Shown: positions 15,023 through 58,918 of the stretch, one piece after another | Layout: every line of letters starts with the position of its first letter | How positions within the stretch are numbered: the first letter of the stretch is position 1 | Source of the DNA: Macrostomum lignano | Lineage: Eukaryota | NCBI GenBank assembly: GCA_002269645.1 | Contig: NIVC01000453.1 | Span: 62,001 to 126,000 of the forward strand | Direction: 5' to 3' | DNA: 64,000 bases | Translations under genes and position numbers: made by a program | The notes under the pieces: generated by a model | Database searches by the model: none | What the model was told of the DNA's origin: nothing | The model's input: the letters and a program-made list of their open reading frames with translations, nothing else

Positions 15023-15056
15023 TCATTCTGCCGGTGCTGGCCCGACTTTGTTGGGT
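15023..15056 (-). CDS. Mucin exon 26: cytoplasmic tail (K)PNKVGPAPAE*
   Basis: Acceptor tttttccAG; phase-2 join with exon 25; tandem TGA TGA. Confidence 0.7.
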
Positions 15057-57000: not shown

Positions 57001-58918
57001 GGTGGTTGTAGTAGGCGCCGCAGTGGTGGTTGTAGTAGGCGCTTCAGTGGTGGTTGCAGTAGGCGCTTCAGTGGTGGTTGTAGTAGGCGCTTCAGTGGTG
57101 GTTGTAGTAGGCGCCGCAGTGGTGGTTGTTGTAGGCGCTTCAGTGGTGGTTGTAGTAGGCGATTCAGTGGTGGTTGTAGTAGGCGCTTCAGTGGTGGTTG
57201 TAGTAGGCGCTTCAGTGGTGGTTGTAGTAGGCGCTTCAGTGGTGGTTGTAGTAGGCGCTTCAGTGGTGGTTGTAGTAGGCGCTTCAGTGGTGGTTGTAGA
57301 GGCGCTTCAGTGGTGGTTGTAGTAGGCGCTTCAGTGGTGGTTGTAGTAGGCGCTTCAGTGGTGGTTGTAGTAGGCGCTTCAGTGGTGGTTGTAGTAGGCG
57401 CTTCAGTGGTGGTTGTAGTAGGCGCTTCAGTGGTGGTTGTAGAAGGCGCTTCAGTGGTGGTTGTAGTAGGCGCTTCAGTGGTGGTTGTAGTAGGCGATTC
57501 AGTGGTGGTTGTAGTAGGCGCTTCAGTGGTGGTTGTAGTAGGCGCTTCAGTGGTGGTTGTAGTAGGCGCTTCAGTGGTGGTTGTAGTAGGCGCTTCAGTG
57601 GTGGTTGTAGTAGGCGCTTCAGTGGTGGTTGTAGTAGGCGCTTCAGTGGTGGTTGTAGTAGGCGCTTCAGTGGTGGTTGTAGTTGGCACCGCACTGGTGG
57701 TTGTAGTAGGCGCTTCAGTGGTGGTTGTAGTAGGCGCCGCAGTGGTGGTTGTAGTTGGCGCCGCAGTGGTGGTTGTAGTAGGCGCTTCAGTGGTGGTTGT
57801 AGTAGGCGCTTCAGTGGTGGTTGTAGTTGGCACCGCACTGGTGGTTGTAGTAGGCGCTTCAGTGGTGGTTGTAGTAGGCGCCGCAGTGGTGGTTGTAGTT
57901 GGCGCCGCAGTGGTGGTTGTAGTAGGCGCTTCAGTGGTGGTTGTAGTAGGCGCTTCAGTGGTGGTTGTAGTAGGCGCTTCAGTGGTGGTTGTAGTTTGCG
58001 CCGCAGTGGTGGTTATAGTTGGTGGTTCAGTGGTGGTTGTAGTAGGCGCTTCAGTGGTGGTTGTAGTAGGCGCTTCAGTGGTGGTTGTAGTAGGCGCCGC
58101 AGTGGTGGTTGTAGTTGGCGCCGCAGTGGTGGTTGTAGTAGGCGCTTCAGTGGTGGTTGTAGTAGGCGCTTCAGTGGTGGTTGTAGTAGGCGCTTCAGTG
58201 GTGGTTGTAGTAGGCGCTTCAGTGGTGGTTGTAGTAGGCGATTCAGTGGTGGTTGTAGTAGGCGCTTCAGTGGTGGTTGTAGTAGCCGCTTCAGTGGTGG
58301 TTGTAGTAGGCGCTTCAGTGGTGGTTGTAGTAGGCGCCGCAGTGGTGGTTGTAGTTGGCGTAGCAGTGGTGGTTGTAGTAGGCGCTTCAGTGGTGGTTGT
58401 AGTAGGCGCTTCAGTGGTGGTTGTAGTTGGTGGTTCAGTGGTGGTTGTAGTAGGCGCCGCAGTGGTGGTTGTAGTAGGCGCTTCAGTGGTGGTTGTAGTA
58501 GCTAAAATTATTCATGTTGGAGTGTTGGCACTGGTTTTATATTGTGGAGTTAGTTCATCCAGTATTCGGTACGAGCTATATATGGTATATTTTTACTCAC
58601 CAGCTTTAGAGGCTGTGACGAGAATAAGGACTGGAAGTAGGTTTTGTGCATCGTCATTTAATAGTATTTATAAGCCCAGAAATCTAATGCATGTACATGT
58701 AGCTCATCAGTCGAATGTGTGTAAAGTATTGAAACACTGTCCTTACCTGTGACCAGCGCTAGTAGCACGGATGGCGTCGCACTTCTCGGCAAGCTGCCAG
58801 GGCGGAACCGGACCGTGGCCTGAAGATTATGGAAGAATGAAAAAATATGAAAACGGAAGAAATGCAAAAGTAAGGTTGGAAATGATTAGCGAAACTTTAC
58901 CGGTGCTAGTTTGCACAT
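15023..58918 (-). CDS. Giant MUC4-like transmembrane mucin (PTS-TSP1-EGF-NIDO-AMOP-VWD-cbEGF array-TSP1-TM), 26 coding exons, about 5,770 aa
   Basis: 26 phase-compatible GT-AG exons: 58918-58901, 58819-58747, 58630-58601, 58501-47647, 47566-47426, 46659-46516, 46350-46210, 46125-45995, 45892-45674, 45006-44854, 43994-43176, 42713-42246, 41433-41148, 39290-38995, 35928-35697, 33325-32957, 31891-31520, 30897-29777, 24011-23462, 22868-22671, 22061-21976, 21880-21765, 19413-19168, 16273-16168, 15905-15790, 15056-15023. Exon 4 has frameshifting deletions. Confidence 0.88.
15790..15905 (-). CDS. Mucin exon 25: transmembrane helix
   Basis: AAVVQSNTGTEPWVIAVATVCAVLGAALILVIILVLIKK; ccgcAG acceptor and AA|GTGAGT donor. 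Confidence 0.9.
16168..16273 (-). CDS. Mucin exon 24: juxtamembrane stalk
   Basis: IASLVQSIQTELDNLNLPITVIFGGASQAYTASTT; phases 2/0 fit the neighbouring exons. Confidence 0.8.
16586..19045. repeat. 24-bp minisatellite (ggggcgcccaacaaagagacacag), about 100 copies, mucin intron 23
   Basis: Tandem array with recurring variant blocks. Confidence 0.95.
19168..19413 (-). CDS. Mucin exon 23: stalk with RKKR furin-type site
   Basis: Lies within ORF 19164..19493; ttttcccAG acceptor and AC|GTGAGT donor. Confidence 0.85.
19490..21685. repeat. 24-bp minisatellite (ggagtggcgccttagttggtgtca), about 90 copies, mucin intron 22
   Basis: Tandem array with a 216-bp higher-order recurrence. Confidence 0.95.
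21765..22061 (-). CDS. Mucin exons 21 (22061-21976) and 22 (21880-21765): stalk
   Basis: TPIEQSNAIELVFNLTVASGSSGITDKL | FENEINSALKQELAKKINEYCSQDSNSQLCCAYKSGAR; canonical junctions. Confidence 0.8.
22130..22640. repeat. 20-bp minisatellite (ggagtcaggaatgtcatata and variants), mucin intron 20
   Basis: Direct tandem copies. Confidence 0.9.
22671..22868 (-). CDS. Mucin exon 20: thrombospondin type-1 repeat
   Basis: DGGWSQWSQWSNCSLACGGGQRSRQRQC...CNPAAC. Confidence 0.93.
22890..23430. repeat. Degenerate about 21-bp CATAGCAACC repeat, mucin intron 19
   Basis: Recurrent (c)atagcaac(c) motif. Confidence 0.85.
23462..24011 (-). CDS. Mucin exon 19: 4 EGF/cbEGF domains
   Basis: DINEC/DIDEC calcium-binding EGF consensus (ORF 23367..24032). 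Confidence 0.93.
24075..29720. repeat. 31-bp minisatellite (ggccacaggtaatagataagagaggctgact), about 180 copies, mucin intron 18
   Basis: 5.6-kb homogeneous tandem array with no spacers. Confidence 0.97.
29777..30897 (-). CDS. Mucin exon 18: 8 EGF/cbEGF domains
   Basis: DINEC, DSDEC, DRNEC, DNDEC, DKNEC, DRNEC and DIDEC repeats (ORF 29726..30817). Confidence 0.95.
30930..31430. repeat. Degenerate TTGGGATCAAA-type repeat, mucin intron 17
   Basis: Recurrent gggatca/gggataa motif. Confidence 0.8.
31520..31891 (-). CDS. Mucin exon 17: 3 EGF domains
   Basis: DINDCQPSNNC..., NINECNSPELNLC...; donor CCGA|GTGAGC. Confidence 0.92.
31970..32910. repeat. 15-bp minisatellite (aatcatcgaaatccc), mucin intron 16
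   Basis: Tandem copies with 4-bp aatc/aacc insertions. Confidence 0.92.
32957..33325 (-). CDS. Mucin exon 16: 3 cbEGF domains
   Basis: DVDEC, DKDEC, DIDEC (ORF 32667..33323). Confidence 0.93.
33385..35617. repeat. 36/32-bp minisatellite (gtgacggaagtttccattacaatagagagagatgca), about 63 copies, mucin intron 15
   Basis: Direct tandem array with no unique spacers. Confidence 0.95.
35697..35928 (-). CDS. Mucin exon 15: 2 EGF domains
   Basis: NGAACLWD...CNCTSGWSGSHCDVDYDAC...CPTGYTGDGITC. Confidence 0.9.
35985..37120. repeat. 21-bp minisatellite (agtgtcagatcccaaacccta), mucin intron 14
   Basis: About 50 copies; the unit contains AACCCTAA. Confidence 0.93.
38215..38935. repeat. 20-bp minisatellite (agacacaattagatacccac), mucin intron 14
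   Basis: About 35 tandem copies. Confidence 0.92.
38995..39290 (-). CDS. Mucin exon 14: beta-rich (cadherin/Ig-like) spacer
   Basis: ENVAPAFSINGSLLLQVTASVNSSATVTVSDKNDD...IRVHFCQCK. Confidence 0.85.
39360..41095. repeat. Polypyrimidine 14-bp repeat (ctccctctctcctt), mucin intron 13
   Basis: 1.7-kb tract that is almost pure C/T. Confidence 0.95.
41148..41433 (-). CDS. Mucin exon 13: VWD C-terminal Cys region
   Basis: AWMIDCSQ...QICGTDRACIFDIAATGDSSVG, the C..D..C.FD..ATG motif of MUC4/SUSD2-type proteins. Confidence 0.9.
41459..42235. repeat. (AACT)n tetranucleotide microsatellite, mucin intron 12
   Basis: About 190 copies with rare substitutions. Confidence 0.97.
42246..42713 (-). CDS. 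Mucin exon 12: VWD body
   Basis: ...TGLEGLLGNFNGDKTDDL..., a VWD consensus. Confidence 0.92.
42790..43040. repeat. Degenerate (TTAAGGGATCAGGGA)-type repeat, mucin intron 11
   Basis: Recurrent agggatca/ttaaggg motif. Confidence 0.75.
43176..43994 (-). CDS. Mucin exon 11: end of NIDO, AMOP, start of VWD (GDPH)
   Basis: SFTAYVLTDFNNTQVAVLF; CPERL...CFHRRSAGPVCCY; GYGDPHLVSWDGLPFTFNGVGQYII. Confidence 0.92.
44020..44340. repeat. Degenerate 11-bp GGTTGCTATGC repeat, mucin intron 10
   Basis: Recurrent gttgctatg motif. Confidence 0.8.
44854..46125 (-). CDS. Mucin exons 8-10 (46125-45995, 45892-45674, 45006-44854): NIDO domain
   Basis: RFPIGDRFASAFY|ATRTGVLAF...GIVAAFWSNK; canonical junctions in phases 1/0/0/0. 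Confidence 0.8.
45050..45590. repeat. 40-bp minisatellite (gataagagcacctggctttattgggacacacctgctgact), about 13 copies, mucin intron 9
   Basis: Direct tandem copies. Confidence 0.93.
46210..47566 (-). CDS. Mucin exons 5-7 (47566-47426, 46659-46516, 46350-46210): one EGF each
   Basis: Symmetric phase-1 exons: DPCNPNPC..., DFDEC..., DKDEC.... Confidence 0.9.
46695..47425. repeat. (AACT)n (46695-47225) followed by (CTCA)n (47256-47425), mucin intron 5
   Basis: Two adjacent tetranucleotide microsatellites. Confidence 0.95.
47647..58501 (-). CDS. Mucin exon 4: 10.9-kb Thr-rich PTS tandem-repeat exon ending in a TSP1-like domain
   Basis: Acceptor attttAG at 58503-58502; about 350 x TTTTT(E/A)AP, then about 105 x TTTT(D/A)G(A/S), then WVLESCSATCG...RRRQC; donor G|GTACGA. 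Variation is mostly codon-preserving; six 1-2 nt deletions interrupt the frame. Confidence 0.85.
58601..58918 (-). CDS. Mucin exons 1-3 (58918-58901, 58819-58747, 58630-58601): signal peptide
   Basis: The joins give MCKLAP|ATVRFRPGSLPRSATPSVLLALVT|VLILVTASKA|A: basic n-region, hydrophobic h-region, small-residue cleavage site. All junctions are GT-AG and phase-compatible. Confidence 0.65.

Follow-up and report, generated by a model that had tools for sequence, protein, structure and literature searches.

A stretch of 64,000 nucleotides (nt) from the flatworm Macrostomum lignano (assembly GCA_002269645.1, contig NIVC01000453.1, positions 62,001 to 126,000 of the forward strand; hereafter the window) carries, on its minus strand between 58918 and 15023, a long threonine-rich repeat array followed by MUC4-type and EGF-like coding sequence. 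Is this one gene for a giant membrane mucin, and is its combination of domains new? An initial annotation made from the sequence alone had answered yes to the first question and implied as much for the second. We favour, at a probability of about 0.72, a single 26-exon gene for a type I transmembrane (TM) mucin of the MUC4/invertebrate 'mucin-like protein' family, about 5,780 amino acids (aa) long after bridging six indels. The architecture, as judged from sequence comparison, is an old one.

Exon structure of the gene

Stop-to-stop scanning combined with boundary reading resolves the locus into 26 exons on the minus strand, from an ATG at 58918 to a TGA at 15023. All 25 introns are GT-AG, every phase is compatible, and exons 5-26 splice into one open reading of 2,121 aa, which together support the single long type I membrane mucin gene proposed initially. 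The gene is real and that first splicing model is essentially correct. The raw coding sequence (CDS) measures 17,341 nt, which is 1 modulo 3; with 8 placeholder bases added it becomes 17,349 nt, or 5,782 codons plus the stop. After this 8-nt bridging the ATG frame and the downstream exons are in register, with zero stops within exon 4. The features of the gene are listed below, where cbEGF stands for calcium-binding EGF.

59040-59047, minus strand: putative TATA-like box TATAAGAG, about 120 nt upstream of the ATG, by direct reading
58901-58918, minus strand: exon 1, ATG and MCKLAP, donor GTAAAG
58747-58819, minus strand: exon 2, n-region and start of the predicted signal-peptide h-region
58601-58630, minus strand: exon 3, remainder of the predicted signal peptide; exons 2 and 3 give SVLLALVTVLILVTA, then SKA/A
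47647-58501, minus strand: exon 4, 10,855 nt, Thr-rich mucin array and TSP1-like module; 3,621 codons, stop-free after the 8-nt bridging
47651-47845, minus strand: degenerate TSP1-like Cys module (DPCLTGFSYSDWVLESCSATCGSC...SLPEC) at the 3' end of exon 4
47426-47566, minus strand: exon 5, EGF-like domain; junction agrees with UniProt A0A1I8ISB7
46516-46659, minus strand: exon 6, cbEGF (DFDEC...); Pfam EGF_CA 2.7e-10
46210-46350, minus strand: exon 7, cbEGF (DKDEC...); Pfam EGF_CA 9e-7
45995-46125, minus strand: exon 8, start of the NIDO region; junctions as in A0A1I8ISB7
45674-45892, minus strand: exon 9, NIDO; Pfam NIDO 8.5e-5, 23.1 bits
44854-45006, minus strand: exon 10, NIDO
43176-43994, minus strand: exon 11, C-terminal part of NIDO, divergent AMOP and start of VWD; full-length alignment to MUC4-like proteins
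43239-43250, minus strand: GDPH motif GYGDPHLVSWDG, read directly; cleavage predicted
42246-42734, minus strand: exon 12, body of VWD; Pfam VWD 5.4e-11
41148-41433, minus strand: exon 13, C8-3_MUC4 domain; Pfam PF23263 8.7e-14
38995-39290, minus strand: exon 14, Ig-like (He_PIG/Big_9-type) spacer, ending in FCQCK, the first half of an EGF
35697-35928, minus strand: exon 15, two non-calcium-binding EGFs
32957-33325, minus strand: exon 16, three cbEGFs; Pfam EGF_CA 1.8e-23, 3 stretches
31520-31891, minus strand: exon 17, EGF/cbEGF units
29777-30897, minus strand: exon 18, about 8 EGF/cbEGF units; Pfam EGF_CA 6.4e-51, 6 stretches
23462-24011, minus strand: exon 19, about 4 EGF/cbEGF units; Pfam EGF_CA 2e-18, cEGF 6e-22
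22671-22868, minus strand: exon 20, bona fide TSP1 (WSQWSQWSNCSLACGGG...); Pfam TSP_1 3.3e-8
21976-22061, minus strand: exon 21, first part of the juxtamembrane module (possibly SEA-like)
21765-21880, minus strand: exon 22, juxtamembrane module, putative helix FENEINSALKQELAKKINEY
19168-19413, minus strand: exon 23, juxtamembrane module; TGSPVIS and RKKR dibasic site (19239-19250)
16168-16273, minus strand: exon 24, end of the juxtamembrane module
15790-15905, minus strand: exon 25, TM segment WVIAVATVCAVLGAALILVIILVLI; mean Kyte-Doolittle 3.17
15023-15056, minus strand: exon 26, cytoplasmic tail (KK)PNKVGPAPAE and TGA; C-terminus the same in UniProt A0A1I8IHQ6
14957-14962, minus strand: AATAAA polyadenylation signal, about 60 nt past the stop

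Spliced exons 1-3 encode MCKLAPATVRFRPGSLPRSATPSVLLALVTVLILVTASKA, and the hydrophobic core of the predicted signal peptide (mean Kyte-Doolittle 2.78) is formed only by joining exons 2 and 3. At the other end, exon 25 holds the sole TM-grade hydrophobic segment in the 2,121 aa of exons 5-26. Two in-frame acceptors are available for exon 12, at 42734 and 21 nt downstream, and we chose 42734 because the resulting spacing agrees with that of homologues.

Public annotation breaks the gene into pieces, as had been anticipated. UniProt A0A1I8ISB7 (P0003), a 505-aa M. lignano entry called 'EGF-like domain-containing', spans exons 4-11; it is 100 % identical over 149 aa to window positions 48094-47648, follows the same downstream exons and shares the junctions of exons 4 through 10. 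Its model skips the first 36 codons of exon 11 (TSSFTAYVLTDFNNTQVAVLFDDCETNW), and we consider acceptor 43994 the better one because the skipped residues align with the conserved NIDO end of all relatives. The second fragment, A0A1I8IHQ6 (P0088; 177 aa), spans exons 23-26 with shared junctions. Paralogous fragments about 90 % identical to the gene are also present in M. lignano (P0001, P0002 and P0004). No database model joining exon 11 to exon 23 was found, and a homology search with exons 12-16 yielded mostly generic EGF proteins, with no M. lignano model among them.

A 24-bp array encoding TKAPLLTP (19484-21678) was considered as a coding stalk and rejected: its position is intronic, with the exon 22 donor on one side and the exon 23 acceptor on the other, and the independent model A0A1I8IHQ6 uses that same acceptor.

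Domain order and relatives

The predicted N-terminal half runs from the signal peptide through the Thr array, a degenerate TSP1, three EGFs (one EGF and two cbEGFs, exons 5-7), NIDO, AMOP, VWD and C8-3_MUC4 to an Ig-like spacer. The C-terminal half comprises about 20 EGFs, a TSP1, a juxtamembrane module (possibly SEA-like) with the RKKR site, the TM segment and a 12-aa tail. The NIDO-AMOP-VWD core, EGF/cbEGF arrays, two TSP1 positions, TM segment and short tail given in the initial annotation are all supported, the tail being now counted at 12 aa. Pfam recovers VWD, C8-3_MUC4, TSP_1 and EGF_CA from this list, whereas NIDO stays below its cut-off, AMOP is unmatched and the first TSP1 reaches E 0.009. 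That annotation had overlooked the GDPH motif, the six frameshifts treated below, the Ig-like character of the spacer and, in the supposed 'stalk', a possible SEA-like fold and an RKKR site.

The Cys module at the end of exon 4 reads YSDWVLESCSATCGSC...RRRQC... and its Pfam TSP1_ADAMTS match, at 16.7 bits, falls short of the 23.8-bit cut-off. In the alignment with amphioxus CAH1237975.1 the module stands in register with a TSP_1 domain (Pfam 1.9e-13). NIDO homology is likely, given colinearity with strongly NIDO-positive relatives. For AMOP, the Pfam model PF03782 gives no match in the flatworm sequence at E up to 10; it likewise finds none in a newt mucin-4-like protein (E up to 10) or in sea-star mucin-like proteins (one searched at E up to 10, the others at 0.001). 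Failure of a model that also misses the AMOP of newt and sea-star relatives says little about the flatworm. When a family profile with the flatworm sequence as master was compared with the Pfam-AMOP-positive units of protein P0005, hhalign returned a probability of 98.9 % at E 1.6e-17, and the flatworm domain retains the CP.., RCF, GPVCCY (CCY) and LC..Y..RP..C motifs and LCPQYLKYRPVC. Homology and profile-profile comparison together support the presence of an AMOP between NIDO and VWD.

A search with exon 11 against 1.84 billion representatives gave 72 matches, about 10 of them end to end (residues 3-271) and including a sea-star 'mucin-like protein', the amphioxus 'FBN3' and shark and newt 'mucin-4-like' proteins. 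An AlphaFold2 model of the exon built on an 11-sequence alignment (mean predicted local distance difference test 49.7, predicted template modelling score 0.38) has no evidential weight either way. Foldseek of this poor model against the PDB found no match at E <= 0.001, the Isthmin-1 AMOP structure (PMC12000326) included, and a profile search against the PDB matched GDPH/VWD starts only.

The VWD domain opens with GYGDPHLVSWDG, and its GDPH aligns with the GDPH sites of the FCGBP, MUC5AC and MUC2 VWDs in the PDB. GDPH is known as the cleavage site of MUC4/SUSD2 (PMC8660890, PMC6696261), and it is the site of autocatalytic cleavage in FCGBP-type VWD domains as well. C8-3_MUC4 was recovered again in a second Pfam scan (3.9e-12). 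Exon 14 corresponds to a family-wide module of the form NFPP...D.D.D...WTP...C.C. The flatworm copy reaches Big_9 E 0.038 at best, and we predict an Ig or cadherin-like domain because the homologous spacers of relatives match Pfam He_PIG (~1e-8) and Big_9, in the range 1e-8 to 1e-5.

Between the spacer and the second TSP1 lie about 20 EGF units with 119 Cys. Fifteen of them carry the calcium-binding junction C-x-[DN]-x-[DN]-[ED]-C; these form runs of about 4, 5, 5 and 1, with non-calcium-binding EGFs in between. The number of units in the initial annotation was right, but its single rigid rod is not: the stalk is three or four cbEGF segments with non-calcium-binding interruptions. The TSP1 of exon 20 matches PF00090 at 34 bits, well clear of the cut-off of 21.6.

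The juxtamembrane module (exons 21-24) measures about 185 aa and matches nothing in Pfam or in a PDB sequence search. The UniProt fragment over exons 23-26 is labelled 'SEA domain-containing protein'; a local phmmer comparison with the SEA of sea-star relatives showed no similarity, and the SEA autoproteolysis motif G/SVVV is absent from the module, which has only TGSPVIS at that place, with the RKKR dibasic site 40 aa downstream.

The closest comparison is with amphioxus 'FBN3' CAH1237975.1 (P0019). BLASTP aligns flatworm residues 17-1537, numbered from the TSP1-like module, with amphioxus residues 2-1541 in one colinear high-scoring segment pair (27 % identity over 1,638 columns, E 5e-131) that reaches from TSP1 into the EGF array. 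Both proteins have the order TSP1, EGF/cbEGF, NIDO, AMOP, VWD, C8-3, Ig spacer, cbEGF array and TM. They differ in that the amphioxus Pro/Thr/Ser-rich (PTS) repeat is short and placed between the EGF array and the TM segment, whereas the flatworm array is N-terminal, and in that amphioxus has GEPH where the flatworm has GDPH. Further invertebrate relatives are Acanthaster XP_022099415.1, Patiria XP_038045778.1 and XP_038046205.1, Mactra KAL4236418.1 and a Saccostrea mucin-like protein, several of which have 8-17 cbEGF junctions and a TM segment. A G[DE]PH core occurs together with 17 such junctions in the Acanthaster 'fibrillin-1-like' protein, 12 in the Patiria 'Notch-like' protein, 8 in Mactra and 12-13 in the newt and shark mucin-4-like proteins. 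A C-terminal TM segment is present in most of these relatives. The PTS array varies in position among family members or is absent, and most of the non-amphioxus invertebrates have little or none.

The initial annotation had implied that a MUC4 core joined to a fibrillin-like stalk and TSP1 domains was new, a claim that does not survive these comparisons, the layout being shared with amphioxus and the combination of core and cbEGF runs with sea-star, mollusc, shark and newt proteins. On sequence grounds the MUC4 core with a cbEGF stalk is an old and widespread architecture and not a new fusion, and the data suggest that the long cbEGF stalk and the N-terminal TSP1 belong to this shared architecture instead of a lineage-specific fusion. 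What is flatworm-specific within the family is the size and purity of the N-terminal Thr array and the second TSP1 beside the membrane module: neither the 3,555-aa array nor that TSP1 occurs in any of the invertebrate relatives compared.

The Pleurodeles waltl mucin-4-like protein XP_069068933.1 (P0034) shares the type I membrane mucin plan, with a huge PTS array followed by NIDO, AMOP, VWD (GDPH) and C8-3_MUC4; exon 11 aligns with it over residues 5-272 and it has 12 cbEGF junctions. Vertebrate MUC4 also shares the Ig-like spacer, EGFs, TM segment and short tail. It differs from the flatworm protein in that identity is only about 25 %, the core-plus-EGF block of the flatworm protein is flanked by a TSP1 at either end, its AMOP Cys set is much reduced and its repeat unit is another one (8-aa EAPTTTTT). 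Mammalian MUC4 is described with three EGFs, against about 20 in the flatworm.

Compared by description, the mucin4-like proteins of Actinia tenebrosa and other anemones have signal peptide, PTS, NIDO, AMOP, VWD and TM in common with the flatworm protein, and differ in having CUB, ZP or FN3 extras and no reported long cbEGF stalk or TSP1 (PMC9080433). Some of them have an extra C-terminal SEA (PMC9080433), possibly as in the flatworm. Proteins of the SUSD2/Drosophila Mesh type (the P0005 units, Lingula and Tubulanus SUSD2-like proteins) share the AMOP, VWD (GDPH) and C8-3 core, and GDPH-dependent cleavage is known for SUSD2 (PMC6696261). Unlike the flatworm protein they have Sushi and IPT-like modules, a canonical, Pfam-positive AMOP, and neither PTS array nor cbEGF stalk; the P0005 units also lack NIDO. 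P0005 itself, a 7,101-aa ENA protein, consists of about 10 tandem SUSD2/Mesh-like units (AMOP, VWD with GDPH, C8-3, Sushi) with one TM at the end; either the protein is genuinely this large or its model fuses the members of a tandem gene cluster.

With fibrillins the flatworm protein has in common tandem cbEGFs with C-x-D-x-[DN]-E-C junctions. Pfam scans of the exons revealed no TB (8-Cys) domain, which is why the 'fibrillin-like' description of the stalk has to be dropped beyond the tandem cbEGFs; unlike fibrillins, moreover, the protein is predicted to be membrane-anchored and carries a mucin array. It is not a fibrillin. Relatives P0019, P0054, P0014 and P0009 are auto-named 'FBN3', 'fibrillin-1-like' or 'neurogenic locus notch homolog' owing to their cbEGF runs, and the fibrillin names among these are automatic mislabels.

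Two adhesive proteins of the same species, Mlig-ap1 and Mlig-ap2, invite comparison. They are giant (5,407 and 14,794 aa), highly repetitive and Cys-rich, with VWD and C8, a 17-cbEGF 'fibrillin-like' region in ap1 and TSP1 repeats in ap2 (PMC6410801). They differ in being secreted gland products with KR-rich repeats, C-type lectin and TIL (ap1), LDLa and 221/255-aa repeats (ap2), in lacking NIDO, AMOP and a Thr array, and in that the text of the paper never mentions a TM segment (PMC6410801). Pfam scans of our gene revealed no KR-rich repeats, C-type lectin, TIL, LDLa or 221/255-aa repeats. Identity with Mlig-ap1, considered for its similar size, 17 cbEGFs and VWD, is ruled out by the differing domains and repeats. 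Among the top-ranked literature matches, no paper mentions AMOP and flatworms together.

Frameshifts in the threonine array and competing readings

The array of exon 4 amounts in the 8-nt-bridged reading to 3,555 aa, 60 % of them Thr (2,128 Thr, about 2,180 Ser/Thr). Its parts are as follows, with TRF standing for Tandem Repeats Finder.

50097-58501, minus strand: 24-bp array, about 350 units, (E/A)APTTTTT; TRF and unit census
47877-50083, minus strand: 21-bp array, about 106 units, TTDGATT-type heptads; TRF
53790-57312, minus strand: stretch with all six frameshifting deletions

Along exon 4 the Thr frame shifts six times. The aberrant units start at 57312 (-1), 56761 (-1), 56498 (-1), 56211 (-2), 55853 (-2) and 53815 (-1), and are 23-nt units at four sites (two detected merged with a neighbouring unit) and 22-nt units at two, so that four 1-nt and two identical 2-nt deletions remove 8 nt in all. 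The array units are 94 % identical and the Thr frame is stop-free throughout. The Thr array of about 3,550 aa and the total of about 5,800 aa given initially are right for the repaired reading; the six frameshifts went unflagged, as did a literal open reading frame (ORF) of 629 aa. This literal product would consist of 441 aa of signal peptide and Thr repeats followed by about 188 aa of out-of-frame LLQPPLKR repeats. The LLQPPLKR repeats (56736-57312) are basic, with zero acidic residues.

Public M. lignano assemblies were built from PacBio continuous long reads with Canu and polished with short reads by Pilon; 15 % of the genome consists of tandem and simple repeats, and 180 Mb lie in duplicated blocks at least 95 % identical (PMC5730564). 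We hypothesize that the six frameshifts are probably uncorrected long-read consensus errors in an 8.4-kb near-perfect array and not real lesions, because all six are deletions and all fall inside the array, where short reads cannot be placed uniquely, and because the non-repeat CDS of about 6.4 kb has zero frameshifts and the 22 downstream exons are intact.

Several observations weigh against a single intact gene with the product that we propose. Read literally from the ATG, the frame closes after 629 aa at a TGA at 56735-56733. The two -2 lesions are identical 22-nt units, which is odd for random error; their flanks differ, as seen when a shared duplicated higher-order block was considered. 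Given the near-identical duplicates in this genome (the fragments about 90 % identical, the 180-Mb blocks), one copy could be a young pseudogene. Exons 1-3 and the links from exon 11 to exon 23 are predicted from genomic sequence and not from transcripts. The NIDO match falls under its cut-off of 25 bits, the AMOP has lost 3 of about 10 family cysteines, and neither Pfam nor PDB sequence search detects a SEA in the juxtamembrane module. The O-glycosylation, GDPH cleavage and furin cleavage proposed below are predictions from what is known of the family.

Were the frameshifts real, the locus would be a recently disabled paralogue, or would yield only the 629-aa secreted product (a signal peptide, then Thr repeats for about 400 aa and out-of-frame LLQPPLKR repeats for about 190 aa), with the MUC4-type exons no longer translated from this promoter. 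The early end of the literal reading and the six independent lesions with their two identical units speak for this, as does the existence of duplicates, about 90 % identical, able in principle to take over the function, yet we consider it unlikely. All 2,121 codons of the 22 downstream exons are open with intact GT-AG, so that the gene could have been inactivated only very recently; the Thr frame never gains a stop among units that remain 94 % identical; the bases lost in the lesions add up to precisely what is needed to bring the frame back into register; and every lesion lies where short-read polishing fails. Very improbable, in our judgement, is a division into two or more genes, with a secreted Thr-rich mucin (exons 1-4) separate from a MUC4-like/EGF membrane protein and possibly a further break before the TSP1/TM exons. 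The database models are all fragments with none joining exon 11 to exon 23, and the amphioxus relative begins at TSP1; against this, bridged exon 4 is stop-free and its phase-1 GT donor fits exon 5, the TSP1-like module, the colinear counterpart of the amphioxus N-terminus, is encoded inside exon 4 in the same frame as the array, and A0A1I8ISB7 itself joins the array to exons 5-11. No internal ATG with signal peptide and no polyadenylation signal is evident between the blocks, and the relatives all need a TM end, which exon 25 alone holds.

The same gene structure might also serve another role, as a secreted or shed adhesive or cohesive part of the duo-gland adhesive organs or as a partner of the adhesive on the anchor-cell surface, instead of a general glycocalyx mucin. 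M. lignano does adhere by means of the giant repetitive Mlig-ap1 (VWD, 17-cbEGF 'fibrillin-like') and Mlig-ap2 (TSP1), and in the published model cationic Mlig-ap1 attaches to negatively charged glycans of glycocalyx-bearing microvilli (PMC6410801). The gene is, however, neither Mlig-ap1 nor Mlig-ap2: it lacks C-type lectin, TIL, LDLa and KR regions, its repeats differ and it has a TM anchor, and the adhesive footprints are without glycocalyx lectin signal (PMC6410801). We regard an adhesive role as quite unlikely and retain the single gene for a type I membrane mucin.

Surrounding sequence and predicted function

The window is rich in minisatellites. The 25 introns of the mucin gene (15057-58900) total 26.6 kb, 79 % of which is tandem repeat. 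The 15 introns longer than 400 bp are 30-98 % array-filled with units differing between introns, and the other ten (nine of 80-262 bp, one of 733 bp) are without arrays. Intronic arrays include the following.

46690-47425: (AACT)n
45049-45592: 40 bp x14
41461-42245: (CTAA)n x196, beginning right at the donor
39359-41070: 14 bp x122
33381-35617: 36 bp x64
24069-29718: 31 bp x181
16588-19049: 23 bp x110

The rejected TKAPLLTP array is a further one, with 92 copies and a long open minus-strand frame resembling a Pro/Thr stalk; an annotator could take it for coding sequence, and it could occasionally be exonised.

A neighbouring gene lies at 7208-12548 on the plus strand. Its exon at 9234-9941 encodes a FAF1 (Fas-associated factor 1) domain (Pfam 1e-37), an ORF at 7208-8332 without Pfam match is probably an upstream exon, and minisatellites occur in its introns too (8389-9215, 9967-10847, 11510-12548). 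Also on the plus strand, a 113-aa ORF at 6324-6665 with a Cys/His pattern (C..C...H...H, C..C) and no Pfam match may be a remnant of a mobile-element zinc-finger protein. The minus strand at 63491-63886 encodes the final portion of a catalytic domain of protein tyrosine kinase type (PK_Tyr_Ser-Thr 3.5e-40), and the gene continues past the window edge. Just downstream of the kinase exon, a 15-bp array of CAGCACCAGAGGCGC (62627-63452, x55, copies 99 % identical) is open in several frames on both strands (APEAP..., QHQRR..., LAPLV...).

How might the mucin work? Its signal peptide would direct it into the secretory pathway, where the array, with its Ser/Thr residues densely O-glycosylated in the Golgi, would become an extended bottle-brush approaching micrometre length. 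As in MUC4 and SUSD2, VWD would cleave itself between GD and PH. The mucin-bearing alpha subunit (array, TSP1-like module, 3 EGF, NIDO, AMOP) would then stay attached through non-covalent contacts to a beta subunit anchored in the membrane (VWD, C8-3, Ig-like spacer, about 20 EGF, TSP1, juxtamembrane module, TM). The three or four calcium-stiffened cbEGF segments, hinged by non-calcium-binding EGFs, would hold the head about 50 nm off the membrane. Shedding of the mucin may occur through dissociation at GDPH, possibly also through a convertase cut at RKKR, and a tail of 12 aa makes signalling through it unlikely.

Such a molecule would likely serve as a coat on an epithelium, whether as glycocalyx, lubricant or barrier. 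M. lignano has a lectin-positive glycocalyx, the protein scaffold of which is not named in the adhesion paper (PMC6410801), and the gene is a plausible candidate component of it. It is a long shot that the mucin is the main scaffold of the epidermal or anchor-cell glycocalyx, providing the negatively charged partner for binding and release of cationic Mlig-ap1 during temporary adhesion, and that its architecture with a SEA-like module is that of the ancestral MUC4 of bilaterians, from which vertebrate MUC4 would have been derived by trimming.

Frameshifts in kilobase-scale perfect coding arrays of long-read assemblies truncate gene models, and as the LLQPPLKR case illustrates, frame errors there may mimic plausible 'Lys/Arg-rich repeat' proteins. 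Here they concern a gene that public annotation splits into unrelated-looking fragments and for which we provide a full-length model, in a species that supports RNA interference, in situ hybridisation and transgenesis. A mucin specialist will not be surprised by the protein, whose kind is already known. It adds a platyhelminth to the family of MUC4-type membrane mucins, a family that names such as 'FBN3', 'fibrillin-like' and 'Notch-like' conceal.

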